This document shows positions 1,700 through 56,738 of a stretch of DNA of 64,000 nucleotides, one piece after another (within the stretch, counting starts at the first letter, position 1; the number at the start of each line of letters is the position of its first letter). Below the pieces are notes generated by a model. That model was given only the letters and a program-made list of their open reading frames with translations, was not told the DNA's origin and did not search any database. This DNA comes from Octopus sinensis (lineage: Eukaryota): positions 33,740,464-33,804,463 of the forward strand of contig NC_043011.1 in NCBI RefSeq assembly GCF_006345805.1, in the 5' to 3' direction. The translations under genes and the position numbers were made by a program.

Positions 1700-1873
1700 C
1701 ATTTGGGGAGAAGAGGTCTCGATCAAAGACACTAATACATAAGACATCTTGGTGCACATCTCGAATGACAAACTGCATTGAGTCATTCCATTTGGGATTA
1801 AGGGTTCCATTGATGACTTTGGTCCTATGTTCTTGGCTTCCCATGCTCACTTCACAATAAGGGTCACTTTTTC
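1700..1873 (-). CDS. ITSN: Intersectin C2 core exon: (G)[57 protein letters not shown]
   Basis: 174 nt, phase 1-1; acceptor ccctcag, donor G/gtcagt; C2 motifs SDPYC, TLNPKWN, VFDRD. The terminal exon was not found in 1-1699. Confidence 0.96.
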
Positions 1874-2617
1874 CTGAGGGTTGCCAGGGCAACAGAAGAA
1901 AAAAATAGGTGTATTAGAAGGAGAAAAGATTGTATAAAAAATGTGGTATCATTTTTTAAAAAAACATGAAAAACAAATACATTTGCTTACGGAAGTGAAA
2001 CAGAAAGAAAGAAAATAATGATAATAATAATAATAATTCTTTCTAATTTCGGTACATGACCAACAATTTTGCAAGGAGGGGCAAATCAGTTACATTGACC
2101 CAATTACTCAACTGGTACTTTATTTTATTAACCCCCAATTCAAATCCCCAATGGGATTTGAACTCAGAACAAAGGGCCAGAAAAACTGCCACTAAGTGTA
2201 TTATTTGGCATAGAAATGATACTGCCAGCTCAATCCATCAATAATAATAATGATAATAATAATCCTTTCTACTATAGGCACAAGGCCTGAAATTTTGGAA
2301 GATAGGGCTCGCCAATTACCTTATTATTATTACTATAAGAACAATAAATATCCATGTAATATTTTTCTGCATAACTTCATTTGATTTTGTAAATGAACAA
2401 TCAGGTGTGTTTACAGTGAGTTCCTTTACCCTAAGTATCAGGAAGACATTCGGCAAGAAAGAGAAACAAAGTTGAGATATTCTGAGGAACATAAAGGAAA
2501 TGAAAATATAATATCCAGTAGACCTGTTGCAAAATATTTGCCTTCTTGGCATGGCCAGAATCATTAGAAAAGTATTAGATATTTGAAGAGAAGAAATAGC
2601 ATGGTATGATAGGCGGA

Positions 2618-3520
2618 TCTTTTCCCTTTGAATGGCAGATCGAGAAATTAATTTTTTGTAACTAAACACTTTCAAACTTCGGACACTGGTAGAATGTGTC
2701 ATATAAAACATCTTTTACTCTTAGCGTTTTTGAGAAAAGTTTATATTTAAGATGTTATTTCATGTTAAAGTTGTCGTATTTCGGTAATTTCAACCAATCA
2801 ATGACATGTATTCAGCTGAATAAATTACTGCCGTTACTTGTCAACAACAACTATACACAGTGGCTATACATGGTGTATATTTCATTTGTCACAGTTATTT
2901 ATGACATCGTTCGTGCATTTGTACTGGTTTTAGCTTTAAGGTTTTAGGGTTAGGGCTTTGGGGTTAGAGTTAGGGTTAGGGTTTTAGGGTGTTAGGGTTA
3001 GGGTTGGGGTTTTAGGGTTAGGGTTACGGCTTCAGGGTTAGAGTTATGGAAAATAATGAAAAATGAAGAAATTGGAGGGGTAGAGGCAGGGGGGGGGGGC
3101 AAAATGTCTTTTTGAAAATAGCAGCTGATAAACAGGAAAAAAGAAAATTAAAAGCCGCAGAAATGCACGAACAATTGTGGTGGTGCCATGAAGTAAATAT
3201 GCTTCAGATATAATTGTTTATTCATACAAACATAACTGAGATGAAATATGTCATAAATAACAGTGACAAACGAAATATATACTGCCGGAAGTTGTTGTTG
3301 ACAAACAACAGCAGTAATTTTACTTAGCTGAATACACGTCATTGATTGGTTGAAATACAACAACTTTAACACAAAATAACTTTGTAAATATAAACTTTTC
3401 TCAAAAATGCTAAGAGTAAAAGATGTTTTATATGACACATTCTACCAGTATACGAAGTTTAAAAGTGTTTATTAGTTACAAAAAATTCTTTTCTAAATCT
3501 GCCGGCCAAAAGGTAAAGAT
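2618..3520. mobile_element. Fold-back element with ~280-bp inverted arms and an internal degenerate (TTAGGG)n tract
   Basis: Arms ~2618-2906 and ~3247-3520; ORFs 2696+ and 3148- give near-identical translations. TTAGGG-like repeats at ~2935-3047. Confidence 0.85.
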
Positions 3521-4879
3521 CCCAATAGGCTGCAGATAGCAAGACTGCTACTCATGCAAGTTTCAAGATTCCAGGCATTACAACAAAACCTGAGTTAAAC
3601 GAACAATAATAATTTAGATATGACACATAGGGGTCGTGGTAGAAGTGAAATTGGATGTAAGCCTTAGGTTTTGAGACAACCTAATCATGTGTCAAGTAGT
3701 ATGTAGTAGATCGATATATCCAGGTGAATTTTTTTTAGATAAACATTACTGTTTTATTTTTTAATTTAGGTGCAAGCATGACCATGCATTTAAGAAGCTT
3801 GCTTCGCAACCATGTGGCTTTGAGTTCAGTCCCACTGTGTGGCACCTTAGGCAAATGTCTTCTATTATAGCTCCAGGCCAAACAATGCCTTGTGAGTGAA
3901 TCTGGGTACAAGAAGCTGTGTGGAATCCCTTCATGTGTGTCTATTTCTTAGTATTTGTGTTTGTCCCCACCATGACTTGACAACTGGTGTTGATTTGTTT
4001 ACATTCCCTTAACTTATTAGTTTGGCAAAGGAAAACGAGAGAATAAAAACCAGACGTAAAACATAAATACTGATGTGCTTGACTCGAAACCTTCCAAGGT
4101 GGTGCCCCAGCATGGCTGCAGTCTTATGACTGAAACAAGTAAAAAGGTAAAAAGAGCATCATCTTTTTTTCCCCAGGATCTCGTAACTGTAAAAGTAAGT
4201 TATTCCCAAAACAGGGACCTGGCTTGACCGTTTGCAACAGCATGCTATTCTGGTCAAAAGCACCCATAGGTGTGGTGGTCTTTTTGTTTTTTCTATGCTT
4301 TGTTTTTTTTTTTCCATAATAAATGAAGACAGAGACACAGATACATTCCTTATATCTCATCACATAAAAGAAATAAAATAAAAATTAAATGGAAATGTAT
4401 AACTGATATCATAACAAAAATATGAGTTCAAATCCTACCAGATTTGACAAAACATTGTCTTTCCAGGATGAGATAGAGTTGGAGTGAGGGAGCCTATAAA
4501 ATAAGAATCAGCCAAGTATTTGGGTCAATATGATCAAGTATACACTTTATATTTCAATCAAAATGCGCATCATTATGTTAGAAATCAATAAGATTATAAT
4601 TTTCTAGTCAATTAATTACTGTCATCATCAGAGTATAATAGAGTAATAGAGAGTGTGCACAAATATATATATATATATATATTGTTTTGGTACAATGGTA
4701 GAACATCTATCATGTTTACAGAAGATGTAAGTTCATGTCACATAGCCAGCCTTTGCCTTTTTCTATCCCCCAAAATTTTTAAACCCAATATTTACAAGTT
4801 ATTACTTATAACTTAATTAACTCCAAATTCCACCATCAAAATTATTAATTTCACATATTTAAAAATTTCTAATTTATGA

Positions 4880-4920
<41 letters not shown>

Positions 4921-6122
4921 GCGCACACACATACATATATATATGTATATACATGGTGGCTCTTTGTCCTTGCAGGGATTGACCTCTTCTTGTACATATA
5001 ATTGCTCTTTCCTAATGTAAGATCTTAAATTACTTTTGGGTTCTGAAAAGCATATGGGGTACAGCATTTAAAACTGAAATAAACACTTCAAATTGTATAG
5101 TCTCCCCACTGTCCTGTTTTGAGGATATTACAGCATTAATAGGCTAAAACGAAGGTTTTCTGGTTCAAATTTAGACTGGTATTATCTACACATCTGTGAA
5201 GCTGTGAAACCTAATGATTAGGGTGATCCTAAGTTCATGGTTTTAATTCCTGGACTGGATAGGGGGTTGTGTTCTTGAACAAAACACTTCATTTTATGTT
5301 GCTCCAGTGTAAATATATATAACATCTGTACATCTACTGTACAGATTATTAGCACCATCTTTAGAATGTATATTCACAATATTTCTAAATCTTCACTCAT
5401 CACTCTTTACACATCCTTTACACAGTGGATAAGAACATTATTATTCTTAGCTTAGAAGTAAAGGTCCCTATTTTGAATCTAACCTAGTATTTTGATACAA
5501 AACCCAGATTATAGTAACTAATGACCATTGGAGATGAAATCAACTGAACAAAACATTTCATGTTGCTCCAGTCCACTCAGCTATAAAATGAGTTGCAGCA
5601 GTAGAGGGGAAGTTAACCCTGCGATGGACTGGTGTCCCATTCAGGGGGAAAGTGTGTTGTAATCTCAGTTACTTATACAACAGGAAAACTGGGTTAAATC
5701 CAGCCTTATAAATGCTAGGATTCAGTTCTAGGTCTAAGTATCAAAGCAAGTGTCTTTACATTTAGGAATAGGACATCTGAAGATGATAGGAGGTCAAATC
5801 GGTCAACCCAATAGAAATGTAGTCTTGATAGTTTGTTGTAGCTAAATATGGCTAAGGCCATGTTGGACTATTACCTTCTAGTATCGGTGCCATTTTTTAT
5901 TTGTGTGGAGGAGTGTGGGGGAGGGGTACAAAAACCCATTTATCTTTAATGATGATGCCAGTAGTCAGGAAAAGTGATTTAATGTTCCCTTCATCTTGGA
6001 CATTAAGACATGGTTTTCAACTTCCAAGTATATTTTCTTTCTTTCTTTTTCACTTCAGACACATTAAACATGTAAGAAAAAATTACAAAGAATTTTTTTT
6101 TTTAAATATTATATATTTAAAA

Positions 6123-6159
<37 letters not shown>

Positions 6160-7680
6160 TATTGTTGTTAGTGATGTTAGAGTGCCACAAACAGTTTCGG
6201 TGTCAGTTGCATCACAAGAATATAGTTGAAAACATAGCACATTACAATAAACACTTCCTCTTGGCCATTTAACAGGACTGAAGCAACAGTTAAAGAATAT
6301 AGACAACACTTGTTCAGACTGAACACAAATCTTTGTAACAAATAAAATAAAACAAAAACAAAAAAAAAAAACTAAACAGACCGCAAAGAAAAAAACACAA
6401 TAAATCAACGAATTTAACTCTATATAATAGGTGTGACAGTGTGGTTAAGAAACTTGCTTCCTAACCCTGTGGTTCTGAGTTCAGTTCCACTGTACAGCAC
6501 TTTGGTCAAGTGTTTTCTACAATAGCCCCAGACACACAAAAGCCTTGTGAGTGGATTTAGTTGACAGAAACTAAAATAAGCTTGCTGTTTGTCTATATGT
6601 ATGTATGAGTGCGTTTATGTATGTATATGTGTATGTGTGTATGTATTTGTGTGTACCCTTTGACAACTAACATCATCATCATTATCATGCAAACGATGAT
6701 GGTCATTTCCAGAAACATGTCTGGTCATGAGGAAAGATTGCTTTGCTTGAAAACAGGTGAGGGTTGGTGACAGGAAGAACATCCAGCCATAGAAAATCTG
6801 CCTTGACAAATTCCATCCAACCCAAGCATGCATGGAAAAGTGGATGTTAAAACGGTGATGATGATGATGGTCATAATTTGGTCATAATTAATCAATTGCT
6901 GGAGGAAGGCCTCAACACACCACCACTATCAGTACAGGCTGTAGGCCTACATTCATGTCAATACTGGTCAATTACAAGTATTTGCATGGTCAGGTGCTTA
7001 TCCCTGGCCATTGATAGCTAGATAGAATTTGAACTCAGAATGCAAATGAGTCAGAGCCAATCCAACCAGGCATCTTCTCTGACACTCTAACAATTCAGCC
7101 AGTCTACTGCCCTTGTCAACTACTTTATTCACTGACCCCAGTATGGAGGAAAGGCAATACTGACCTAGGTGGAATTTGAACTCAGACTACAGAATGAATA
7201 CTACAAGATGGGTTGTCTGATGCTTTAATCACTCACCCATTTTACCACCTATACAACACCAACATCATTATCATTAACATTATTGTAAAGCACTGCTGCT
7301 TATCATTATCATATTTATTAAAATTAAGAGCAACACTAATGACAGTAAACTGAGTGCAGGCATAGTCATGTAGTTAAGAAGTTCACTTCATAGTCGCCTG
7401 GTTCCAGGTTCAGTCCCACAATGCAGAATCTCAGGTAAAAGTTTTTTCTATCACAAGTATGTCTCAGGCCAACCGAAATTTTATGAGTAAAACAAGGTTA
7501 CAGAAAGTGTAGAGAAGCCCATTAAATGGACTTTTCCCTTGCTTATGTTCATAAGCAGCAGACTTATCTGTTGCCCTGTTGAACACCACTGCCATCACCT
7601 CTATCATCATCACCAGGTCCTTGGATGTCTTTAGGAGATTCCATTCTTTTGCAAACATATAGAATGGGTTACCAGATTAA

Positions 7681-7898
7681 CTCTTTAGTATTTAAACAAG
7701 CCATATCAAGCCCAAATACTCTACCTGGTTTATGTTCAAAATGGCCATATCTGGTCTCTTACACCTACCCTACAATGCCATTCTGATGTTAATATTCACA
7801 TCGTTGAAATCTTGAAGCTACAAGATTATGCATGATTCATTCAAAATAATATGAATAAATAAGCATGACATTCAACAAAGAAATTTGAAGCTAAAGGG
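7681..7898. mobile_element. piggyBac-type MITE
   Basis: TTAA TSD on both sides; ends CTCTTTAG / CTAAAGGG. Confidence 0.7.
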
Positions 7899-9236
7899 TT
7901 AATGACAATTCATGAGTCGGGTTTTTTTCTGTTAGTGTTTTTTTTTTGCTTTTTTTGCTTTTGCTTTTCCTCTGTTTACCCAAACAAGTTTTGAAGGCCC
8001 TGAAAAATGTTCAGATTTCTTTATTTTGTTTGTTTGTTTTTGGTTCATAGTTCTTTTTTTTTTTTTTTTTTAATTTTTGCATTTTTTGGTAGGGGCTACC
8101 AGTTTCCTGACTAAGCTATAAAAACAAAAACAAACAAAAAGCAAAAAACAAACAGAAGCAATGACTTTTTGCTGAACCTGAAGCTGCATCAATAGAAGCA
8201 ACATCTGCAACAACAGCAACAACAGCAACAACAGCAGCAAGAAAAGCAGCAGCACAACAGCACTTTAAAGCCATAAAAAATAAGATGGAAAAATCTGAGG
8301 AAATTAGTGTTAGTCTTCATCTATGAAGTTACCACCATCTTCCTATGACTAACACAATTCGTCCACTTCACTGCAAATTGCTATACTAGCAATGAACACT
8401 GGTTCCTGTCACCCATCACATAGTTGCTTCTATAAAAGGCCTGCGGTTGTGGAGTGGAATTATCGCCCACTTGTCTAAGTCAAAGATTAATAGGAGCACA
8501 CATGGGCTATGTGGTTAAGAAGCTTGCTCTGCAAAGCAGGTAGTTTGGGGTTCAGTCCCATTGTGGAGCACCTTGGGCAAGTGCCTTCTACTACAACACT
8601 GAGCTGGCCAATGCCTTGTGAGTAAATTTGGGAGGTGGAAATTGTGTGGAAGCCTGTCATGTGTGTGTGTGTGTGTTTGTATTTGTGTTTACCCTCAACT
8701 TCTCTTGACGGCCGGTGTTGCTTTATTTACATCCTCGTAACTTAGTGGTCTTTGAGAAGAAGACCAACAGAATAAGTACCAGACTTTAAGAAAAGGCTGA
8801 GTACTGAGGTTGATTTGTTTGACTAAACCTTTCAAGGCACTGCTCCAGCTTGGCTGCAGTCCATTGACCGAAACAAGTAAAAAAAAAAATAAACAAACAA
8901 TAAATAAAGATAAGACAGAAATATGAATGGAGTAGAATTACTAATATTCTCAATAATATTTTATCCATGTGAATTAGAGAGACCAAATGGAATGTTACAT
9001 TATTCCACATTTAACTCTAGCAAACACCAAAGTTATGAAAATAAGTTGATAACTACGAATGACCTTTCCATTTTTGGCACAGTTTCTATTGCTGGATGCC
9101 CTTCAAAATACCAACCATTTTACAAAATACCACTGACTGCATTTTTAAATTAAGCATCAGCAAGACTACAGAGCCCACTTGGCTCTAGTGCTCTTTTGAA
9201 TTTCGGGTCTTCTTAACTTAAAGGATTCTCCTAAAC

Positions 9237-9581
9237 CAATGGTTCTCAACCATTTCTTTACCTATGGACCACTTACATTACTTTACTATTTTATTCTGGT
9301 GGACCCTGTTCCCTATAGCCATTCAATGTTTAAAAACAAGTTTTATAGATACTTCTTCCAAAACTCCTATTCTGTTTATCAGATGTTCACTTATGTAGGT
9401 TTGCAATAGCATTCTTTGAGAGAATATTTCAGTGGCTGGAAACATTAGCGTAAGAAACCTAGTTGTTTCCAAAGCAAAACATTTTCATTGACCCTAAAAT
9501 ACTACTGTGGGTCTCCAACTTACTATTTTCCTACCATGGACCTCATAAAAACTTCATATAGACTCCAATTGAGAACCATTG
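9237..9581. mobile_element. hAT-type MITE
   Basis: TIR CAATGGTTCTCAA / TTGAGAACCATTG; perfect 8-bp TSD TCCTAAAC (9229-9236 and 9582-9589). Confidence 0.88.
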
Positions 9582-9662
9582 TCCTAAACATTGTTTTCTA
9601 CCACCACCACCACAAGTAGTAGTCACAGTAGTAGTAGTAGCAGTAGTAGTAGTAGTAGTAGC

Positions 9663-9694
<32 letters not shown>

Positions 9695-10088
9695 ACAACT
9701 ATTATTAGAAATAAACACATCTTATGTGAGAAGTGCCTAGTTAATCACTGCATGTACTCTGTGCTATTACAGGGTGAAAGCGAAACAGTAACAATGGCTA
9801 AGAACTACAACAAACTGAACAACAACAACAACAACACAACAACAATAATCGTTTCAAATTTTGCCACAAGGGCAGCAATTTTGGGGGAGGGGATGAGTCA
9901 ATTACATCGACCCCAGTGTTCAACTGGTACTCATTTTATCGACCCCGAAAGGATGAAAGGCAAAGTCGACCTCGGTGGAATCTGAACTCAAAATTTAAAG
10001 ACAGACGTAATACCACTAAGCATTTCATCTAGCATGCTAACGATTCTGCCAGCTTGCCACCCTAATAATGATAATGATAATAATAATG

Positions 10089-10174
<86 letters not shown>

Positions 10175-11009
10175 GCCCTGATGCTGTACCAGACAGTGGC
10201 TCTCATGGCTTCTGATCTTAACTGATTGGAAGTGTTATCATGTACATTGTTTTATCTTGGTATAAAAGATGGGCTACAGCAAATATTTTTCTCAATACCA
10301 CAGATTTGCTTGTAAGTTGTTTGACCTTAACCAGTTGAACATGTCTCTTAGTGGCTGATGATATGTGAATCTCAGCCCATGAGCAGAAGTAGTGGGGGAG
10401 CATCATAGCCTTGTGTTGAAAGGAATTCTTGGAGGTTTGGATAATTCACCTTTGGAAACATGGGTGGTTCATTCAACATCGTTAAATAATCCCTATTCGG
10501 GGACCTTTTGAGCGGGATGGGCTACTCGACCAGAAGAAAATTCTAACTGGGCCCCACCTGCAAGGACATGCGCTGTTTATCTTGATACGAGATTACCATG
10601 TTGCGCACATATGGTTGTGATGCCTTATCAGACGGGTAGTCTGATAAGGCATCACAGACGGGTAGTCTGGTGTACCCTTATCAGATGGGTAGTCATGATG
10701 GGTATACTGGGATTTGTATATTTTACCCCAGTGTCACTTTAATGGCATGCACTCCTCTCTCACTCAATAATAATAATAATAATAATAATAATAGCCATTT
10801 CAAATTTTGGTACAAGACCAGTAATTTTAGGTCGAGAGGGAAAATAATCAATTACATTGATCTCCAGTACCTGACCAGTACTTTATTTTGTCAATCCCCA
10901 AAGGATGAAAGGCAAAGTTGACCTCAGTGGTATTTGAACTCAGAGCGTAAAGACAGACAACACACCACTAAGCATTTTGTCTAACAATTCTAAAGCTCAC
11001 TGCCTTAAC

Positions 11010-11061
<52 letters not shown>

Positions 11062-11250
11062 GTTTCAAATTTTAGTACGAGGCCAGCAATTGTGGGGGAG
11101 GGTGCAGGTCGATTTCATCAACTCCAGTACACAACTGGTACTTATATTTGAAAGGATGGGAGACAAAGTTGACCTGAAGAGCATTTAAACTCAGAACGTA
11201 ATGACAGACAAAGCATTTCGTCTGGCATGCTAACGATTCAGTCAGCTTAA

Positions 11251-11471
11251 CCTTTTCGTTACTGTATTTATTTTGAGATGCTCTGTGATTCTCTCAATTA
11301 TTTTAGATGTAACAAAGAATTTATTAAAATAACTTCGTTATCATTAAGCTCGTGTTAGGAACATAAATTGTGACTAAGGTTTGGTGGAAGATTTTAATTC
11401 AAAATTTATGAAAACAAGACATTTGTACTACAGAGCCAGAGCCGGTTTCAGCCGGGTTGGTAACGAAAGGG
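11251..11471. mobile_element. piggyBac-type MITE
   Basis: TTAA TSD; TIR CCTTTTCGTTAC / GTAACGAAAGGG. Confidence 0.78.
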
Positions 11472-11569
11472 TTAATAATAATCTTTTCTACTCTAGGCAC
11501 AAGGCCTAACATTTTTGGGGGAGGGGGCCAGTCAATTAGATTGACCCCAATATGCAATTAATAATAGTC

Positions 11570-11780
11570 TTTTCTACTAAAGGCATGAGGCCTGAAATTT
11601 GTGGGGAGGGTACTAGTTGATTACATCGACCCCAGTACTCAAACTGGTACTTACTTCATCGACCCCGAAAGGATGAAAGGCAAAGTCAACCTTGACAGTA
11701 TATGAACTCAGAATGTGAAGACGGATGAAATACCGCTAAGCATTTCGCCCGGCATGCTAACGATTCTGCCACCTCACCAC
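11570..11780 (-). mobile_element. MetaSINE-like tRNA-derived SINE (representative copy)
   Basis: A box TGGCAGAATCG, B box GAGTTCA, core CTTTGCCTTTCATCCTTTCGGGGTCGATG. Other approximate copies: 1385-1600, 2035-2235, 9845-10060, 10790-11005, 11060-11245, 16975-17165, 21710-22320 (three), 40184-41440 (about five), 54095-54300, 55005-55135 (all minus); 27340-27405, 43075-43210, 59375-59590 (plus). Confidence 0.8.
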
Positions 11781-11818
11781 CTTCAATAATAATAATAATC
11801 ATGATAATAATAATAATA

Positions 11819-11869
<51 letters not shown>

Positions 11870-11959
11870 GTAATAATAATAACAATAATAATAATAATAA
11901 CAACAATAATAATAATAATAGTAATAATAATCGTAATAATAATAATAACAATAATAATA

Positions 11960-11990
<31 letters not shown>

Positions 11991-12070
11991 TCATAATAAT
12001 AATAATAACAACAACAACGGTACTGTTGAAGATTGAAATCGTTTGTGACCAATTCAAATGCTCAGCATAC

Positions 12071-12148
12071 CATTCAAGTCACATGCCACAAGATTGATGC
12101 CCTCTAAAATCACAACCAGCAGACGTCCAATTCCTCCAGTCCGTTTGG
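12071..12148 (-). CDS. ITSN: Intersectin C2 beta1/loop1 alternative exon B: (S)KRTGGIGRLLVVILEGINLVACDLN(G)
   Basis: 78 nt, phase 1-1; long pyrimidine tract ending cactttctctcag, donor G/gtatgc; GIGRLxVxxxEGIxL motif of intersectin C2. Confidence 0.88.
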
Positions 12149-12205
12149 CTGAGAGAAAGTGAAAACAAAAACAAAAGAAAAAAGATAGAAAGAAAAAAAA
12201 ATAGC

Positions 12206-12298
12206 ATGCAAGTAAGGTAAAGGGTAGGTAGGAGAGGCTGAGCCATGCAGGGTGGATTATCAAGCAATGTTTGTGGCATAAAGTTAATAATACATGCA
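12206..12298 (-). promoter_or_regulatory. Cluster of three UGCAUG (RBFOX-type) intronic splicing motifs upstream of exon B
   Basis: Plus-strand CATGCA at 12206, 12244 and 12293, i.e. 58-150 nt upstream of the acceptor, in non-microsatellite sequence. Confidence 0.55.
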
Positions 12299-12699
12299 AG
12301 AACAATTACATGATGGGTGATATGGTTGATATCCTATTTTGAAATGTTGGAATAATAAATGGTATAGAATGAGATATCTAAGTTCTTGATAACATTTTAA
12401 CAGTGTCTGTTTGTTTTTGATATTGTTATTTTTTCTGTTTAGTTTCTTTTTAACACTACAGTGTAATAAATAATCATATTGCACACATGTAAACGCATAC
12501 AAATATCCATGTACAAACATGCACACACACACACATATATACACATATATACACTCTTACATACACACACTCCTAAATTAGTGTTAAATCTGTCAACAAA
12601 ATTTCACCCCTTCATATCAAACATGCACTAAATGTACAGTCCATAATATATTTCAGATCTATGCAAGGAGCAGGTTCCAAGTGAGGTGAATATCTATTG

Positions 12700-12736
<37 letters not shown>

Positions 12737-13862
12737 CACACACACACACAAAAGCCAAACTTGCTATCTTCAATTTGGTGTTTGTGCTTACCCTTGGTCA
12801 GGAATCTTAGGTAATGACTAAAGGAATGTGACCAAAGATTCTATTTCTTAACATTTTCTTATCATTGTCAAAGACTTTATCACTCTATTTTAATACGTCT
12901 ATGTTAACTATATTTTAACACCACAAAGGCTACAGAAAGCCTTACATTTTACTTTGGAAAATCTTTTTTTTTTTAAATGAAAGCCGGCAAGTCAATAAAC
13001 ATCTTTAAAATACCTCTGCATTTTCAAATCCTCTATATGCATGAAAATACATACCTAAAACATTGAAATCTGCATATACATACATACACACATACATACA
13101 TACATACAAAAATACCCTGTTACTGATGTTGAAATTCCAATGAAGGAACCTTAGATCTAGATTAGAAACCAGTTCTTTTTCTATTGGCAAGAAATCTTGA
13201 AATAAACTGAATAATGACATACATACATACATACATACATACATACATACATACATTCTATACCAACAGACAGACACTCTGTTAATCTATCTATGGTAAG
13301 GGTCTCACATATGTATTACTATAGTGAATTGAAAAACTTCAGTTAACTAGATTTAGCCATGTAATTAATTAGATGGCAAGAACCCATGCTAAAATATAAA
13401 AATCGAACACACGAACAAACTCAATCAAAAGCTAAAATGAGCCAAGGGGAATAACTCAAATGGGTCAGCATATTGGATATATGAGCCCCTATCATAGTAT
13501 TTGTATTTAGAAGGAAGAACACTTCTGTGAGATTATTCGCCCCACTCCACACTCAACCCTGTTTGTAGAAATTCACATTTACAGACACTCAAACACTGTG
13601 TGGGTTTTATAAATGAAGAAGTGAGAAGGGGCTCTATGGTTGTTATGATGATGTCAGATACATGCAACGGGGTTAATAAAACACATGCAAACAATGTTCA
13701 TTGTGCACCTAAAAAAAAACAAATGGACAAAAACAGGATAACAAAGTTATTTGATATAAATATTATTTTTCTATTTGAAAAGAGACAAGTGTTATTAGAT
13801 TCAAACAGATCAGTAAGAAACAAGAATTACATACATTAACAACAAACATAGATTATCTATAT

Positions 13863-14154
13863 CAGTGATTCTCAACCATTTTTTGCCTGTGGTCTCCTTT
13901 GATTCCCATTTTAATTGGGCAGGCCCTCACAGCCATTCGATGTCTAAAAATATCCCATTATATTTTAATAATTAAATATTATTAAGAATTGCTTAAAAAA
14001 TACTAAGACTTATGATACCTGAAAGAAGTATAAGCAATTTATTGCAGATAAATTTGAACAAAAGCAATTTTATATGGACCTCCAAAGGTCATATGAACCC
14101 CTAAGGATCATATGGAGCCACACGGGTCATATGGGGCTTGGTTGAGAACCACTG
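13863..14154. mobile_element. hAT-type MITE
   Basis: TIR CAGTGATTCTCAACC / GGTTGAGAACCACTG; 8-bp TSD ATCTATAT / ATCTACAT (7 of 8). Confidence 0.85.
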
Positions 14155-14489
14155 ATCTACATCAGCAACAAATTGTCAATGTCCACAATAAACATACAGT
14201 ATCTATGTCAATAACAAACATAAATTATGCACATTAGTAACAAACATAAATTATGTACATCAGTAACAAGCATAGAATTAATAATCTATAACAGGTATAA
14301 ATTATGAAAATTAGCTGAATGAGTAAAACTTCTAAATTTTAGATATTACTTCATTGTTAAAACTGAATCATTTTAATTTGCTTATATTTTTCTAAATGAG
14401 TCATTTTAAGTGATTTTCAATTGTTGTGTATGATACATTTAACCCCTCTGCAATCTCTCACACAGTTATACGAGAATCAGATTTAATTA

Positions 14490-14885
14490 TGGCTTTGATT
14501 CGGTCATCATTCAGTATGTTGACCAGAACGTTGGTCAACTTTGAGTGAAAAATCTCCAGAATGGAATTTTTTACTCCATTTCTGACATGTGTGTTCAGTT
14601 AAGCAATCAATACCATATACTTCACATATCCCTTTGTGAGCCTTGGCAGCTTTTTTGCCTTTGTGGAAATAAAAAAGCAAAATATGGTGAAAATGTTTGT
14701 CTTTGCACTCCATGTTAAAATTGACACTGAACTAACAGATGTAAACAAAATTACATGCAATTTGCTTCTAAAGTCAGCAAAAAGTAATGGCTATCAAATG
14801 TCAAAAGGAAAAAAAAAAATCATACAGTCGTAGTCATGGCCAATTTCATTGTTGCATAACTGGCCCATTTAAAAGCACCCTTTAA
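14490..14885 (-). mobile_element. Truncated mariner: 5' end plus N-terminal HTH coding remnant
   Basis: ORF 14507-14713 MECKDKHFHHILLFYFHKGKKAAKAHKGICEVYG...WSKKFHSGDFSLKVDQRSG is a mariner HTH; boundaries approximate. Confidence 0.8.
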
Positions 14886-16048
14886 TTGTTGGCTGATTGT
14901 GAAGACCTATTGAACCAAGTGAAATTTTAGTTGTGACCATGCCAGAGCCACCTAACTGGCACCTGTGCCAGTGACACATAAAAAACACACTTCGTGCATG
15001 GCCGATGCCAGAGCTGCCTGACTGGCATCCATGCTGGTAGCATGCAAAAAGCACCATTCAAGCATGGTTGATGCAAGTGTTGCCTGACTGGCACCTGTGC
15101 CAGTGATACGTAGAAAATATCGTCCAAGCGTGGATGATACCAGTGCTGCCTGACTCTCAGAGTAGTTGACATTAGGAAGAGCAGCCAGCTGTAGAAACTT
15201 TGCCAAATCAGATTGGAGCCTGGTGCAGCCTCCCGGCCTACCAATTCTCAGTCAAACCGTCCAACCCATGCCAGCAAGAAAAGTGGACACTAAATGACGA
15301 TGAAGATGATGATGATGATGATGATTGCCATATCACCAGAATCTTAAATTCACTGAATTCTTGGACTTTGGATGCCATATATTACTCTCAAGAATTAAAA
15401 CTATCATGATTTGAAAAGAGTTTGAACTGCAGGACCAAACCTAGAACTTCTTAACCTCATGCTCATATAACTTATATTATAAGAACTGAAGAAAGCTTAA
15501 AATCTTGTTAGCACATGATCAAGATCTCTCATCAACTTGGGGTTTTAGGCTAACTCAATATCTATGGCAATACTTAGTATGTTCACACCACCATAACAGA
15601 TTCACAGGTTTTAATAGGTTCCATACTTTAAGTTAAGCCTTTTGCTATTCACTTTCACAAATTTTCTTACCAACATAAGAAACTACACTTAAACTGAAGT
15701 TATGTAAGAAGAACAGGGGAAAATATTTAAATTACCTTGTTTTATTCTACACATGCAATTGAATTCTTCCTACTCTTGAGTAGTTGGTTGGCTGGCTGGC
15801 TGACTAAACATTCTAGAAGGGGCATTTAAATAACACTGCCAAAGAATTTGAAGATATCTACTTCCTATGTTAAAACTAATCCAAAGTGAAAATGATCTGC
15901 AGAGTTGAACAGGAAATGAGATGGGAGAAACAATCTAGAAATAGATAAAGCCTGCCATCATGCAGAAGCTTTTGAAACTTAATCTCAAAAAAATCTTAAT
16001 AATAACGTCTAATCAAATTCATGAATAATTTTTCTGCTTTAGCTTTAT

Positions 16049-16049
16049 C

Positions 16050-16114
<65 letters not shown>

Positions 16115-16131
16115 TAATAATAATAATAATG

Positions 16132-16192
<61 letters not shown>

Positions 16193-16203
16193 TAATAATA
16201 ATG

Positions 16204-16258
<55 letters not shown>

Positions 16259-16278
16259 TAATAATAATGATAATAATG

Positions 16279-16332
<54 letters not shown>
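16049..16332. repeat. (TAA)n microsatellite (representative)
   Basis: Others at 325-392, 700-760, 10063-10171, 11785-12018, 20020-20190, 41150-41228, 54918-55000. Confidence 0.95.
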
Positions 16333-16333
<1 letters not shown>

Positions 16334-16431
16334 GTGCTTGTCTGATATTGAAAGGCAGCATCGGACAAAACATCTAATTACAGGAGTCATCTTAATTCCA
16401 CAACAACCAGAGACTGACAGATGGATAAGAA

Positions 16432-16473
<42 letters not shown>

Positions 16474-17759
16474 ATGTAATGTATGAATTTGTATGACATT
16501 CAAGTTTAACAAATAAAAACCACTATTCAGCATGGATTATAAAATACTGAAGAAGATTGCACTGGAAATTGGCAACTGTTTAAAATATACCACTAAAAAG
16601 ATTGTGTGAATGTATGTGTTTGTGTGTGTCTGTGTACAGGTGCACGGGCACACATGCGATATTGTATAATAAGATATATCTTGAGAATCATCGCCAACAA
16701 TGTACATATAAACAGATGTAAAAATGATCTGTGTATTTAATTTCTAACACGGAATTGACAAAGGAAACATAAATGAGATCAATACTGTTCACAACGGATG
16801 CCTGAGGGAAAATTATTAAATCTTCTGGCCTGGCATAGTGTTAAATGAGGAACCATAATGTAAAACCAACTGTAGTAGAGCAGTTCTTGAAATAAAACAC
16901 CAATGGCTCAGATGGCTCCAACTTATGTTGTTTCAGGGCAGCATTAAGACAGACACCACCAAGGAACTGAAAACAAAACCTGCAATTTCATAGGAGGGTG
17001 TAAGTCAATTACATCAGCTCCAGTGATCAACTCCTACTTATTTTATCAACCCCATAAGGATGAAAATTCAAAGTTGACCTCAGGAAAATTTGAACTCAGC
17101 GCATAAAGATGGATGAAATGCTGCAAAACATTTTGCCCAGTGTGCTAACAATTCTGCCAGCTTGCTGCCCGGTCTGTTAAGATTTTTTTCATTTCCCTCT
17201 GTGCCAGTTCGCCATGCTCATCTGATAGTCAAAAGACCCTTTTTGATTTGTTTCTATTGTTGTTGTATTCATACAATTATTTTCTTTTTGTTGTATAGCC
17301 GAAAGGTGTTTGTCCATTGTATATGTATATTCTATTTCATAATGTTACGTTCGTCCCATAGTCAAAAGACCCTTCCTGTTATTTACTTATTTGTATTCGT
17401 ATATATACAAAAAATATTTCCTTCTTCTATTGTATAGCCAAAAGGCATTCTGTCATTTGTGTATAATTCTAGCTTTCTTGTTTTTGCTTCCATTTCTGTT
17501 TTCATTCTCGTACACATTTGTTTGCCTTTCCCAGAGGCTTAATGTTTTTAGCTTAAGTCCCTGGCCCTGCCAAATCTGAGTAGTATCAGAGATAAAGAGG
17601 TGAAACTACAAAGACATTTCAGACTCTAACTGAAAAAGTTTTTGGCTCGGAATGTTCTGTGTATCTTGTTTTAGTCCTGTTTGCCATTTGTCGTGCTATC
17701 GTCCATTTTTCTGCAAGTTGGTTTCTGTTTCTTGTTTTCTTTCTATTCTAACTTTGATT

Positions 17760-17795
<36 letters not shown>

Positions 17796-18203
17796 ATTGA
17801 AATTAAAATTAAATTTTTACATTTTTACATTTTGGCATTTTGCTGAGATTTTTTCTTGAGAACACATTCTTCGTGTTAATGGCAATTTGACGTCTATGTT
17901 TAGCATATAGGGTGTCCACTTTAGTGGTCATTCCTCTTAATTTTGTATGTATATATATATATTGAAAGGACCAATGGTCCTTTCTGAGCCAAAGGCTCAT
18001 AAGACTAATTTCCCAGAGTCTGTGTAGCATACATTTTTCCTCTGGACAAGATGCCAATCTGTTGCAGGATTACGCACTTTTACCAGGTGTGTGGACTGGT
18101 GCAACATGAAATGAAGTGTTTTGCTTAAGGATATCACTTAGTCCAGGAATCAAAACCACAATTTTATGATTACACTAACCACTATAGCATATGCCTGTCT
18201 CTT

Positions 18204-18242
<39 letters not shown>

Positions 18243-18550
18243 TATATATATATATATATATAATGTCATGTCCCACTATCTCCAACTGTGGCAGAATGTA
18301 CACCAACATAATGTACACCTCTATAGTATTTGAACTTTCAGAAAAAGATGTCAAGATTTATCTATTCTGTGATGTTATCGTCCTATCTCTTAGGTCACCA
18401 ACCTCTGTTTCTCTTTCCATTAATCATGCCTTCCAAACAGGTCTTGTTGATGTCACAGACCATTCACTTAATGTGACTAAGCTGTTTGAGTACTTTATAT
18501 ATATATATATGTGTGTGTATATATATATATATATATCTCACCCTTATTAA

Positions 18551-18593
<43 letters not shown>

Positions 18594-18731
18594 CATACAT
18601 ATATATATACATATATATATATATACATATAATATATATGTATATATATACATATATATATATGTATATATATATATATGTAGAAGGTTGAAAAGGAACA
18701 CACGAGTTGATATATATGAAAAATCAAGTCA

Positions 18732-18801
18732 AGATAGAAAATGCTAAAATAATTTTATAAAGAACATGTTCTTTATAAAATTATTTTAGCATTTTCTATC
18801 T
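18732..18801. repeat. Perfect 70-bp loopless palindrome
   Basis: AGATAGAAAATGCTAAAATAATTTTATAAAGAACA|TGTTCTTTATAAAATTATTTTAGCATTTTCTATCT, checked base by base. Confidence 0.95.
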
Positions 18802-18840
18802 CGACCTGTTTTTTCATATATATATACATATATATATATA

Positions 18841-19595
18841 TCATCATCATCATCATCATCATCGCTTAACGTCCGTTTTCCGCGCTAGCATGGGTTGGAC
18901 GGTTTGACCGGGGTCTGGGAAGCCAGGGACAGCACCAGGCTCCAGTCTGATCTGGCAGTGTCTCCACAGCTGGATGCCCTTCCTAACGCCAACCACTCCG
19001 CAAGTGTAGTGGGTGCTTTTTACGTGCCACCGGCATAGGTGCCAGGGGAGTCTGGCATCGGCCATGATCGGTTGGTGCTTTTAACGTGCCACCGGCACGG
19101 AAGCCAGCCAAGGCGGCGCTGGCATCGGCCACGTTCGGATGGTGCTTTTTATGTGCCACCGGCACAGAAGCCAGTCGAGGCGGCGCTGGCATCGGATACG
19201 TTCGGACGGTGCTTTTTATGTGCCACCGGCACAGAAGCCAGTCAAGGTGGCGCTGGCAACGGCCAAGTTCGGATGGTGCTTTTTATGTGCCACCGGCTCA
19301 GGTATCACAACTACTATTTCCATTGATATTTGTTTCGATGTTCATGTACATGCACTTGACTCAACAGGTCTCCTCAAGCACAGCAAGATGTTCTGGGATC
19401 CAAGGTACTTTGAATGGGCAGGGGCTATGCGGGACTGGTGCCAGAAGCAGCCCGGGTCTTTGCAGTCACAGCACATCTCCAGAGATCTCGGTCCTTCGCC
19501 ATTGCCTCAGTGAGGCCCAATGCTCTGAGGTCATGCTTGACTACCTCATCCCATGTCTTCCTGGGTCTACCTCTCCCCCTGATTCCTTCAACTGT
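18841..19595 (-). mobile_element. 5'-truncated RTE-clade LINE: ORF2 C-terminus, repeat-rich 3' UTR and (GAT)n tail
   Basis: Minus translation RGRPRKTWDEVVKHDLRALGLTEAMAKDRDLWRCAV; the 3' UTR has ~60-bp GTGCCACCGGCAC units; ends CTAGCGCGGAAAACGGACGTTAAGCGATGATGATG. Confidence 0.85.
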
Positions 19596-19610
19596 TTGGG
19601 AGCGGCACTA

Positions 19611-19685
<75 letters not shown>

Positions 19686-20024
19686 TTATATATATGTACA
19701 ACTTCATATCCAGTCTGCTAATCAGGAATGTGAAATTTGAATAACTAGATTTGAGGTACCAGCTACAATAACGTGTGTGTACATAGTTAAAAAAAAATTG
19801 GTGCTGAGCTTCTTCAAAGCTTGACATTTAGAAACCAAAAGCAATCTGCATCCCCATCACTCATGAGACCCAACTGACTAGAACTAAAGGGTGGATTGGT
19901 TCTAAATTAACAGATAAACAACAACATGGAACCAGGGAATCCAAGAATCCAGTCATCAGGTGACATAACAATGATGATAATGATAATCCTTTCTACTATA
20001 AGCACAAAGCCTGGAATAATAATA

Positions 20025-20062
<38 letters not shown>

Positions 20063-20138
20063 AATGAGGATGATGATGATAATAATAATAATAATGATAA
20101 TAATAATAATAATAATGATAATAATAATAATAATAATG

Positions 20139-20189
<51 letters not shown>

Positions 20190-20633
20190 GTGATCAGGAG
20201 CAGAAGTAGTGGGGGAGCATCATAGCCATGTGTTGAGAGGGATTCTTTGGGGTTTGAATAATTTACCTCTGGAAACATGAGTGGTTCTTTCAACATCATT
20301 AAACAACCCTTATTCAGGGACCTTTTGAGCAGGATGGGCTACTCAACCTGAAGAAATTTCTAACTGAGCCCCACCTGCAAGGTCATATGCTGTTTATCTT
20401 GATATGAGATCACCATGTCGCGCACATATGGTTGTGATGCATGTGCCTGGTGTACCCTTATCAGACGGGTAGTCATGATGGGTATATTGGGCTTCGTATA
20501 TTTTACCCCAGTGTCACTTTGATGGCATGAACTGCTCTCTCACTCAATAATAATAATAAACCTTTCTATTGGAGGCACAAGGCCTGCATAATAATAATTA
20601 TCTTTTCTACTATAGGCACAATGCCTGAATGAT

Positions 20634-20668
<35 letters not shown>

Positions 20669-20792
20669 AAAACAATGACAACAATATGCACTAAATTATT
20701 TTAGCTAAGATATGTCAAACAATTATGGTGTTACATTAGGAGGTTATTTGCACTCATGCAAAACAACAATAATAATAATAATAATAATAATA

Positions 20793-20841
<49 letters not shown>

Positions 20842-21417
20842 CAAAAAGATCTTGTGTGCTAGTATAAGAAATAATCTAATTAACATTAACAAAACAATAA
20901 CTATACAAGACATGATTAACTGACTAATTAAGCATTTCAATGTAAGAAGGCTTTAATTAATTTTGACAAATCCAAGACAGAGAAAAAAAAACAAATAAAC
21001 ATAATGAATAATAAATAAGTAGATTGACGAAAAAAGAAATTGAATGATGAAAAATAAGAGATTTAAGTTGTGATGTGGTAACTATAGCAACTGTATTTAT
21101 AAGGAGAAAAAAATCTATGTGAATAACGTGTTAAATAGAGCTAAACAAAAATAACATTTAGAAAGCAATTTACGTGAGTGTTTGTCAGTAATATATAAAA
21201 ACAAAACAGATATAGATATACATATACACACATATATATATATATTTATATACACATACACATACACACAAAAACAAAACATACACAAAGGTCAAGACAT
21301 AGCAATTCTAAATGACAATTCTAAACCAATGACCGGTGGAGGTCATCAGTGTTACTTTTGCAGTCTTCGTGCAGCGGAACTGCAAAGGTGAGGCAGCAGA
21401 AAGCTGACTTGTCTTAC

Positions 21418-21501
21418 CATTGCCGTGACTGGAAGCGCAAAGACTGATGCCCTCTTGCAGTATGACAAGGAGGCGTCCAACGGTGCGTGAACGTCTCGGA
21501 G
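21418..21501 (-). CDS. ITSN: Intersectin C2 beta1/loop1 alternative exon A: (S)PRRSRTVGRLLVILQEGISLCASSHGN(G)
   Basis: 84 nt, phase 1-1; acceptor ctgttcttccgtag, donor G/gtaaga; paralogous to exon B (shared TTGGACG, GAGGGCATCARTCTT, AATG/gta). Confidence 0.85.
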
Positions 21502-22892: not shown

Positions 22893-24157
22893 TTGGGTTG
22901 GCAACTAAGTTCCCACCATTTAAAAAATTTTTGAATCTATTTTTTTTTGAGAATTCTATTTTTGAATCATTTTGGAATCTATTTTATTATTTTTCTAGTT
23001 AATTTTAGTTAATTTTTGTTTATTTTCAGATCATTAAAATGGAATGTCAAGTTAAGAAAAATGAGCATTTTCGACAGCTTTTTGCTTTTAATCAAGGGTC
23101 TAAGGCTGCAAAAGCTGCTCGCGACATTTGTTCCGTGTATGGAGAGGGTGCCATAGTTGAAAGAACCACTCATGATTGGTATGCCAAGTTCAAAATTGGA
23201 AATTTTGACCTCAAAGACACACCTCAATCTGGCCGTCCAGTTGAGTTCGATGAAGAGAGATTAAACCAACTTTTGCACAAATATTCTCGTCAAACGACAA
23301 GGGAACTGGCAGACAAAATGGAATGCTCCCACACTGCTATGGAGAAGCATCTTCATTTGATGGGAAAGTTTCAGAAGTATGGAGTACGAGTTCTGCATGC
23401 TTTAAGTAACAATAACAAAAATCAATGAGCCACAATCTCCGCTAGATTGCTTGCTCATCACTGCTCAACTCATGGACACAAGCAACGATTTCTTTACTGA
23501 ATCATTACTGGCAATGAAAAATGGTGCCTGTACATTAATATGAAGTAGCATAAATAATGGCTTAGCCCCAGTAAACAAGTGACACCGCGTGTGAAACAAG
23601 ATCTTCATCTGCGTAAAACGATGCTGTGCGTATGGTGGGATTGGGAAGGGATTATCCATTACAAATTGCTTGAACGGAACCAAACGGTCAACGTGGAACT
23701 CTATGTTCAACAGATGGAACAACTCAACATGGCTATTCAAGAGAAAAGACTTAATTAGCAGCATGGAGTTCTTCTGCTGCATGACAACGCCCACCCTCAT
23801 ATCGCCAATATGACTAAGGAAGCCATTCAAATGCATGACAGGCAAGTGCTGTCACACCCGCCGTACTCTCCTGATTTGGCACCAGTGGATTTCTACTTCT
23901 ATCAATCTCTTTCAAATGCTATGCACGGACTTTCGTTCAATACTGATACAGAATTGAGAGCTTGGTTGGATCAATTTTTCGAGTTGAAATCGAGTGATTT
24001 CTGCCAATGAGATATTGAAAATTTTGTTGAACTTTGGGAAGAAGTTGTAAACAACAAGGGTGAATACATTATTGATTAATTAGTTTTTATTTTTAATTAA
24101 ACCTTTTAAAAAATTTAAATTTAAAAAAAACCGGCAGGAACTTAGTTGCCAACCAAA
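22893..24157 (+). mobile_element. Full-length (1265 bp) inactive mariner (DD34D) transposon inserted in a (TA)n tract
   Basis: TIR TTGGGTTGGCAACTAAGTTCC / GGAACTTAGTTGCCAACCAAA, TA on both sides, contains a transposase frame. Confidence 0.93.
23039..24079 (+). pseudogene. Mariner transposase pseudogene (347 codons, no net frameshift, six internal stops)
   Basis: MECQVKKNEHFR...SGRP...ITGNEKW...LLHDNAHPH...HPPYSPDLAPVDF...GEYIID*; 34 residues between the second and third D; first catalytic D is N. Confidence 0.92.
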
Positions 24158-41647: not shown

Positions 41648-41730
41648 ACAGATATGCTTTCTCATTCTTTTTCCTCTCTGTCTCCAAGTAGTACCTTGAA
41701 GCTGTCTCTATTTTCTTCACCCATACACCT
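41648..41730 (-). CDS. ITSN: Intersectin PH C-terminal helix exon: (R)GVWVKKIETASRYYLETERKKNEKAYL(S)
   Basis: 83 nt, phase 2-1; acceptor ttgttgttgcag, donor gtaagt; WVxKI...YxETExKK.EKAYL motif. Ends on a T that completes TCT or TCC (Ser) with either alternative exon. Confidence 0.93.
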
Positions 41731-45960: not shown

Positions 45961-46085
45961 CTGTCATTGGCACTTCCTGCTTTCAAATTGTAAGTTTGGT
46001 TTATGTGGCATAACTGAAAGTGACATGGTGTGTCATATTCTCCATCTGTCCCTGTCTTCAGCATCACTTCATTCAAAAAAATAGG
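45961..46085 (-). CDS. ITSN: Intersectin PH exon: PIFLNEVMLKTGTDGEYDTPCHFQLCHINQTYNLKAGSAND(R)
   Basis: 125 nt, phase 0-2; acceptor tttatttgcag, donor gtaaaa; PIFLNEV motif; phase 2 matches next exon. Confidence 0.93.
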
Positions 46086-48890: not shown

Positions 48891-49022
48891 CATTTTGTAC
48901 ATACGAAACTGGGCTTTTGACTTGATGTTGAAGGTAAAGCTATTGCGATTGGATCCTTGCGACTGTGCAAGCAGTAGGAAATCATTGAAGAGGAAACCAA
49001 CCAGCTCCTTGTTGCTCTTAGC
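48891..49022 (-). CDS. ITSN: Intersectin PH exon: [44 protein letters not shown]
   Basis: 132 nt, phase 0-0; acceptor gtctttttcag, donor gtaaga; [17 protein letters not shown] motif. Confidence 0.95.
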
Positions 49023-51223: not shown

Positions 51224-51295
51224 CTTGTATAAAGTACCAGAGTGTAAGAATTTTCTTGGTCCCAGACAATTGGTGACAGAATTAAAAGTTAATTT
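51224..51295 (-). CDS. ITSN: Intersectin PH-start exon: [24 protein letters not shown]
   Basis: 72 nt, phase 0-0; acceptor cttttgcag, donor gtaaat; [17 protein letters not shown] is the intersectin DH-PH junction. Confidence 0.95.
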
Positions 51296-55314: not shown

Positions 55315-55482
55315 TTCATCCAGACCTTCACAGAGTACATGCTGCTGGATCCATTCTAGATCATTGGAGTTTTCCTTCTCTCGCACTCCTTCATTCACTT
55401 GGCTACATAGTTCTTCAGCTTTCGCTAAGGCATCGACCAGATGCAAATGGTCAGGGTGTTCTTCTGGGGTGTGTTTCAAAAT
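55315..55482 (-). CDS. ITSN: Intersectin DH C-terminal exon: [56 protein letters not shown]
   Basis: 168 nt, phase 0-0; acceptor gttttgattag, donor gtacgt; [17 protein letters not shown] motif. Confidence 0.96.
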
Positions 55483-56639: not shown

Positions 56640-56738
56640 CTTTTTAAGGAGAAGGGGATACCGAGTTATTCGCTGCATGGGTTTCAGAAGGAAACTACTT
56701 AACGGCATTCCTTGACATGCAGGATCTGTGACACATTG
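56640..56738 (-). CDS. ITSN: Intersectin DH exon: [33 protein letters not shown]
   Basis: 99 nt, phase 0-0; acceptor gttgttaacag, donor gtaagt; canonical DH motif [18 protein letters not shown]. Found by manual translation (not in ORF track). Confidence 0.96.

Follow-up and report, generated by a model that had tools for sequence, protein, structure and literature searches.

We analysed a 64-kb stretch of the Octopus sinensis genome (64,000 nucleotides of contig NC_043011.1; hereafter the window, in whose full-length numbering all coordinates are given) that contains the 3′ portion of an intersectin-long gene, with DH, PH, linker and C2 exons, all on the minus strand (Table 1). A sequence-only reading had picked out two exons, A and B, upstream of a shared C2 exon and proposed that the choice between them toggles Ca2+ coordination by the C2 domain of an endocytic scaffold and Cdc42 guanine nucleotide exchange factor (GEF). 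The peptides that it quoted lie where it placed them, on the minus strand, and its interval (1700–21501) is bounded exactly by the shared exon (3′ end) and by exon A (5′ end). Here we describe the gene, the anatomy of the two exons and their counterparts in other animals, and weigh the proposal that they switch a predicted Ca2+ site.

An intersectin-long gene and the exons A and B

The two DH exons match the ITSN1 structures 5hzi and 1ki1 with ~80% identity over 87 residues (E = 1.2e-41), and the next-best RhoGEF family is P-Rex1 (E = 4e-16). The three PH exons and the linker exon align with ITSN1 and ITSN2 structures, and the best solved match of the C2 domain is human ITSN2 (PDB 3jzy, E = 7.5e-31). 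Spliced from the DH exons through the shared exon, the coding sequence is open in both variants, yielding 312 amino acids with exon A and 310 with exon B, and this open reading frame (ORF) is colinear from end to end with RefSeq ‘intersectin-1-like’ proteins at 55–69% identity. The closest protein to the 310-residue form is that of Argopecten irradians (68.7%), followed by those of Dreissena (65%), Branchiostoma (62–63%) and Haliotis (61%). Pfam scores the spliced C2 domain at 66.9 bits for variant A and 75.2 bits for variant B (cut-off 22). On the strength of the DH, PH, linker and C2 matches and of the colinear spliced ORF, we identify the gene as an intersectin-long orthologue (DH–PH–C2, Cdc42-GEF type) of a mollusc-like animal, in line with the endocytic scaffold and Cdc42 GEF of the earlier reading. 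Its introns are long (4–20 kb), which by itself points to a mollusc with a large genome such as a cephalopod. No exon was identified upstream of 56738 within the window; the EH domains, the coiled coil and the five SH3 domains would lie there (the last 7 kb) or beyond the window.

Exons A and B both lie inside the intron between the linker exon (41648–41730) and the shared exon (1700–1873). The linker exon ends in KAYL plus one T (T/gtaagt), and because T+CT at the start of A and T+CC at the start of B both encode Ser, either exon fits the frame. Exon A has the acceptor ttcttccgtag/CT and the donor AATG/gtaaga and encodes (S)PRRSRTVGRLLVILQEGISLCASSHGN+G. Exon B follows a very long polypyrimidine tract, has the acceptor ctctcag/CC and the donor AATG/gtatgc, and encodes (S)KRTGGIGRLLVVILEGINLVACDLN+G. 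The two share 12 of 26 aligned amino acids, including the structural pattern GRLLV.(I/L).EGI.L, and 28 of 42 nucleotides in the core. Exon A is two residues longer, one in its basic N-terminal part and one in loop 1. The N-terminal linker part reads PRRSRTV in A and KRTGGI in B, and several positions of the β1 strand differ too.

Searched on both strands by tblastn with an independent relative (P0001), the 64 kb yielded only two β1-like matches (E = 2e-5 and 2e-3), and a β1-exon profile run on the gene strand also found exactly two; neither search detected a third β1 copy in the window. Because A and B are the sole two matches, are homologous and phase-matched, carry their own splice signals and stand in the only intron where an alternative must lie, they are more than chance resemblances, and these features make them very probably genuine alternative exons. 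They have the layout of a mutually exclusive exon cluster: homologous tandem exons, similar in length and equal in phase, that each bring their own acceptor and donor and are flanked by constitutive exons. As a C2 sandwich contains a single β1 strand, selection of one of the two per transcript is the most likely mode of use.

Table 1. Exons of the intersectin-long gene in the window
Feature	Coordinates	Strand	Remarks
Putative alternative exon A (distal), β1 and non-canonical loop 1 (..EGISLCASSHGN-G)	21418..21501	-	84 nt, AG/GT, phase 1/1
Putative alternative exon B (proximal), β1 and canonical loop 1 (..EGINLVACDLN-G)	12071..12148	-	78 nt, AG/GT, phase 1/1
Shared C2 exon ((G)KSDPYCEV...+G)	1700..1873	-	174 nt, phase-1 G before gtcagt; E = 4e-31 to P0001
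PH helix end and PH–C2 linker exon ((R)GVWVKKIETASRYYLETERKKNEKAYL+T)	41648..41730	-	60% identity to human ITSN1 linker; Pfam PH_13 C-terminus
PH-domain exon (PIFLNEVMLKTGTDGEYDTPCHFQLCHINQTYNLKAGSAND+AG)	45961..46085	-	3qbv_B residues 291-334; donor AG/gtaaaa is phase 2, completed by A of the next exon
PH-domain exon, ends FRMYKM	48891..49022	-	ITSN1 PH in 3qbv_B, residues 240-289
PH-domain exon	51224..51295	-	Aligns to 1ki1_B residues 219-245
DH-domain exon	55315..55482	-	ITSN1 5hzi/1ki1, E = 1.2e-41 jointly with the 56640..56738 exon; ttag/ and /gtacgt
DH-domain exon	56640..56738	-	~Residues 130-164 of human ITSN1 DH; cag/ and /gtaagt

Predicted calcium ligands in the two forms of the C2 domain

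In the numbering of loop 3 of the synaptotagmin-1 C2A domain, Phe stands at +4 and Ser at +5. Variant B follows the synaptotagmin pattern in loop 1 and, for the residues encoded in the window, in loop 3. Its loop 1, ACDLNGKSDPY, has Asp at 0 and +6 (−6 and 0 when counted from the Asp of SDPY, as below), and HMMER aligned it residue for residue to AKDSNGFSDPY of synaptotagmin-3 C2A. Loop 3 was aligned to VYDFDRFSRHD of the same protein, with Phe at +4 and Ser at +5 in agreement, and the shared exon holds both D and D+2 of this loop as well as the second Asp of loop 1. By the alignment of variant B to synaptotagmin-3 C2A, the D/D+6 and D/D+2/D+8 spacings are exact, with D+8 predicted from relatives. 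In variant A, loop 1 reads CASSHGNGKSDPY: His replaces the first Asp, the loop is one residue longer, and the position after the His lacks a hydrophobic residue. The loop-1 pair typical of Ca2+-binding C2 domains (Asp, Asp+6) is therefore present in variant B and not in variant A.

The codon for the fifth Asp (+8) is split, with its G in the shared exon of the window and the remainder in the last exon, outside the window. In four related genomes the last exon starts cag/AT TTY, and G+AT encodes Asp; a spliced transcript of a relative reads CCT AAC GAT TTT where the shared exon joins the last one. The +8 residue of predicted or transcribed relatives is Asp in eight cases, Glu in one and Gln in one. 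Variant B gives the full five-Asp pattern, provided that the last exon opens with Asp as it does in related genomes.

These results agree with the sequence-only reading on loop 1 of exon B, on the His at −6 and on the extra residue in loop 1 of exon A; it had counted one additional residue in A, where the whole exon is longer by two. Its expectation of a final Asp from the last exon is made likely by the Asp in most relatives; the last exon itself falls outside the window. Its suggestion of an R-x-x-T kinase site in the RRSRT of exon A was rejected as uninformative: every copy, like human ITSN, is basic in this region, and distal-type exons do not keep the Thr.

We propose that an exon encoding the end of the linker, strand β1 and Ca2+ loop 1 was duplicated in tandem and that the spliceosome would pick one copy and join it to the shared exon. 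With exon B, the Asp six residues before the SDPY Asp, the D-x-D of the shared exon and the Asp of the last exon would together form a five-Asp Ca2+ site of the synaptotagmin/PKC type. With exon A, a His at the ligand position, a longer loop and the removal of the hydrophobic residue after the Asp would leave a C2 domain whose Ca2+ site is crippled or absent.

Tandem β1 exons in related loci and in transcripts

Relatives of the gene were mostly single-exon ORFs on unannotated eukaryotic contigs, and we examined the surrounding DNA of six of them; walking upstream from the L007 contig via a neighbouring ORF led to L010. Between the linker and shared exons, two tandem β1 copies are present in L004, L005, L006, L009 and L010 and three in L008; all copies in these six loci are of phase 1/1 with AG/GT borders. 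From 5′ to 3′, their loops read ELVPSDAN (canonical) and DLPASKTS (Lys at −6) in L004; IRLRSTSD (short loop) and DLRACDST (canonical) in L006; NLVCSKD (short loop) and DLMASDAN or DLMASDDN (canonical) in L009 and L010; KLMARNAS, NLIASDEN (canonical) and HKLTKGDS in L008; and NLVCSKD and DLMDSHAD (His at −6) in L005, which has no canonical copy. Five of the six thus resemble the window in having exactly one exon with Asp at −6 and one or two non-canonical exons. The pairing of a canonical with a non-canonical exon, as in B and A, recurs in other species.

The species of L005, L009 and L010 are closely related. Both exons are 81–91% identical in nucleotide sequence among these loci, whereas their flanks are 33–50% identical and essentially unalignable, and the exons with ~25–70 nt of flanking DNA are the sole colinear conserved blocks. 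In the non-canonical distal exon, 5–7 codon differences are synonymous and 2 are non-synonymous, and the loop is invariant. Conservation in islands and the excess of synonymous differences indicate that both copies are under purifying selection in these three loci. The conserved intronic blocks span ~40–70 nt directly downstream of the distal exon (L005 3700–3770, L009 2620–2687, L010 7702–7770) and also lie directly upstream of the proximal exon (L005 6221–6275, L009 5322–5360, L010 12947–13002). Their position next to the exons makes them candidate splicing-control elements for exon choice. The proximal exon of L005 (6276–6353) differs from those of L009 (5361–5438) and L010 (13003–13080) by three loop substitutions, from DLMASDAN to DLMDSHAD, the exon being conserved elsewhere, and its change of Asp(−6) to His yields the same residue as in exon A of the window.

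Mollusc copies group by position and not by species, with GRLLVV in proximal and GRLLVI in distal exons, and exons B and A of the window conform to this pattern. Such grouping points to a duplication older than those lineages, and we read it as suggesting that the duplication predates the sampled molluscs, 26 residues being too few to settle the matter. The closest relative, L001, shares 91% amino acid and 82.6% nucleotide identity over the shared exon; no orthologues of A or B were found within 10 kb upstream in L001, whose introns are too long for the alternative exons to come within reach, and the L001 introns contain no DNA alignable to the window.

Gene models and transcripts from other animals contain exons of both types; full-length annotated proteins came from an exhaustive search with P0001. 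In Branchiostoma floridae, the C-terminal 260 amino acids of XP_035687088.1 (isoform X19) and of C3ZLK0 differ only in a 26-residue β1 block, in which YDLQPSDIN/GRSDPY is exchanged for HRLQPCNSN/GRSDPY, an Asp versus Asn swap in a cephalochordate. RefSeq isoform X4 of Haliotis rufescens carries a distal-type, non-canonical exon (GLKSTSDG/GKSDPY) that is 74% identical to the distal exon of L006 and 60% identical to exon A of the window. In two independent RNA sequencing assemblies (Logan L002 and L003; SRR18829207 and SRR11244717), the canonical exon is spliced to the shared and last exons. Both assemblies also keep 300–500 nt of unspliced intron upstream of the canonical exon (L002 1–505, L003 1–310), which reflects either that the intron holding the second alternative exon is removed late or that transcription starts internally. 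A model from the ostracod Notodromas monacha (CAG0918974.1; P0145) has two β1-like segments in tandem before GKCDPFCEV (residues ~340–400) and probably represents an annotation that took in both alternative exons.

The recurrence of the arrangement in several molluscs and in amphioxus argues that exon choice is selected. Were the Ca2+ ligand the selected difference, one would expect the pattern seen in most loci, in which one copy has the exact Asp(−6) register beside others without it.

The remainder of the window is AT-rich (~36% G+C) and contains many microsatellites and transposon remnants. The 20-kb intron that separates the linker exon from exon A includes an ORF on the plus strand (23039–23428) with a Mos1/mariner transposase helix-turn-helix domain (Pfam HTH_48, E = 5.5e-15), by which it is identified as a mariner-like transposon remnant, and a CT-rich low-complexity block (36600–37900) with a GC skew of −0.37 and long spurious ORFs on both strands. 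A repeat that translates as ...APTTL(T/M)EWLALGRASSCRNTARSDWSLVQPPGF... occurs in introns in both orientations (for example, 57115–57273, 58694–58852 and 36033–36413) and is probably an element of this genome resembling a short interspersed nuclear element (SINE). Rfam and tRNA scans of the window gave no match, including to this repeat.

Competing readings, known systems and implications

We put the probability that an exon switch in the intersectin C2 domain alters a predicted Ca2+ site, taken as a whole, at roughly 0.6. It is close to an even call whether the two exons change Ca2+ coordination enough to matter functionally. For the window species, we infer the one-of-two selection, the tissue regulation and the consequence for Ca2+ or lipid binding.

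Several points weigh against this reading. Five Asp residues are necessary but not sufficient for Ca2+ binding. Some C2 domains with all five, such as rat synaptotagmin-4 C2B, bind no Ca2+. The last exon, sought by tblastn with P0001 in positions 1–1699 of the window, is absent there and lies beyond coordinate 1, and L005 has no canonical exon at all. A search for a transcript or protein of the window species with exon A joined to the shared exon gave only relatives at no more than 91% identity, and look-ups of the exon A and exon B ORFs returned none; expression of exon A in this species is presumed. Vertebrate ITSN1 and ITSN2 lack both loop-1 Asp residues, with Arg or Lys at −6 and Asn at 0 (P0108, P0117 and 3jzy). 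The literature searched contains no Ca2+-binding measurement for any intersectin C2 domain; one review states that the domain ‘may’ act as a Ca2+ sensor (PMC12559987), and another calls it calcium-binding (PMC3753573).

Exclusivity adds to these points. Both exons are multiples of three, so the frame does not enforce a choice, and inclusion of both or skipping of both would remain in frame; the Notodromas model with both copies shows that a gene predictor, at any rate, can join the two in frame. None of the mechanisms considered (frame with nonsense-mediated decay, steric hindrance and U12-type splicing) was identified as enforcing the choice. The first was rejected on the exon lengths of 84 and 78 nt, steric hindrance on the 9.3-kb intron between A and B, and U2/U12 incompatibility on the donors, which are not U12-type.

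Because the exchanged exon codes for the linker end and for strand β1 as well, an effect on packing or partner binding is a serious rival. The swap could be real and act mainly on something other than Ca2+: on the packing of C2 against DH–PH and hence GEF regulation, on Ca2+-independent lipid or protein binding, or on the place or time of expression. The differences between PRRSRTV and KRTGGI and at several β1 positions fit such a role, as do the vertebrate intersectin C2 domains, which work without loop-1 Asp and have been reported to bind tubulin and annexin A2 (PMC6547669). From one lineage to another the non-canonical loops vary widely, carrying His, Lys or Asn or being shortened, which likewise resembles surface diversification rather than a simple on/off switch. 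Against this alternative, most species examined preserve the precise Asp(−6) register in a single copy and have lost it from the rest, as selection on the Ca2+ ligand would predict, and every invertebrate sequence compared conserves both loop 3 and the SDPY Asp. We regard this alternative as unlikely, although it is the strongest of those considered.

More doubtful still is the idea that neither variant binds Ca2+, with the C2 domain being Ca2+-independent across animals, the pattern of B a functionless ancestral relic and the exons tuning something else or nothing. It finds room in the lack of direct Ca2+-binding data for any intersectin C2 domain in the literature searched, in the vertebrate paralogues without two of the five ligands and in L005 without a canonical exon. 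In molluscs, amphioxus and a hemichordate, all five Asp nevertheless stand in exact synaptotagmin register, as do Phe (+4) and Ser (+5) in loop 3, which is hard to explain without selection on a metal site, and we consider this idea improbable. That exon A of the window is an unused, decaying duplicate, with only B spliced in this species, is very improbable: no transcript of A was found in the window species, an 84-nt open frame alone is weak evidence and conservation of A itself goes unsupported by L001 with its unalignable introns, but A still has its polypyrimidine tract with AG, its strong donor (GTAAGA) and its exact phase, together with all β1 structural residues (GRLLV.L.EG..L), its non-canonical counterpart is kept in six other loci and under purifying selection where measurable (L005, L009 and L010), and a RefSeq isoform of Haliotis includes the counterpart that is closest to A among those from named species.

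The switch of a predicted Ca2+ site that we favour has partial precedents. Mutually exclusive exons alter C2 domains in invertebrate Syt1, Syt34 and Esyt2 and arose repeatedly (Craxton 2010, PMC2823689). Those exons are, like A and B, tandem and phase-matched within an invertebrate C2 domain; the proteins, however, are membrane proteins with tandem C2 domains, whereas here β1 and Ca2+ loop 1 are swapped in a DH–PH–C2 scaffold and GEF, and intersectin is not in that catalogue (PMC2823689). In dysferlin, alternative first exons yield C2A and C2A variant 1 (C2Av1), a Ca2+-dependent and a Ca2+-independent C2 domain (Fuson et al. 2014, as cited in PMC9333456 and PMC7140416). Positively charged residues fill the Ca2+ pocket of C2Av1 (PMC9333456), which recalls the Lys, Arg or His at −6 in non-canonical intersectin exons. 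The dysferlin case differs in that alternative first exons and promoters replace much of the domain, whereas intersectin would swap an internal exon of 26–28 residues, and in that the Ca2+ difference is measured for dysferlin and only predicted for intersectin A and B.

Closer in sequence, the C2 domains of vertebrate ITSN1-L and ITSN2-L are 60–65% identical to the window gene over the shared exon, have the same linker and the loop 3 F[DE]RDQFSPDD, and are likewise C-terminal after DH–PH. Each vertebrate gene has one fixed loop 1, KPCRSHGKSNPY (KPCRSH/GKSNPY) in ITSN1 and ACKPNGKSNPY in ITSN2, whereas the window gene offers a canonical and a non-canonical version. Variant B has the D..(+6)D of loop 1 and, with the predicted final Asp, the D-x-D-x-F-S-x-x-D of loop 3 in common with the C2A domains of synaptotagmin-1 and synaptotagmin-3 and the C2 domains of PKC alpha and PKC beta. 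Overall similarity to these domains is ~30–35%, variant A is without the first ligand, and Ca2+ binding by intersectin is a prediction only.

A wider history can be proposed tentatively, and we hold it to be less probable than not: an old alternative-exon module in intersectin-long, common to molluscs and perhaps to cephalochordates and arthropods, would supply Ca2+-sensing and Ca2+-blind forms, and in vertebrates its loss would have left ITSN1 and ITSN2 each with a fixed Ca2+-blind loop. If this is true, vertebrate papers that speak of a ‘calcium-binding C2 domain’ misname it, and in invertebrate neurons Ca2+ coupling would be a regulated property of particular isoforms. Intersectin connects exocytosis, endocytosis and Cdc42-driven actin assembly at synapses. 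We found no paper on such exons in intersectin in the literature searched, and RefSeq isoform models already contain them. A canonical and a ligand-less loop 1 on one protein amount to a natural experiment on whether an intersectin C2 domain can bind Ca2+, and comparison of A with B would show any effect on membrane targeting or GEF activity. With these exons, intersectin would join the few genes whose C2 domains are varied in invertebrates by a choice between mutually exclusive exons.

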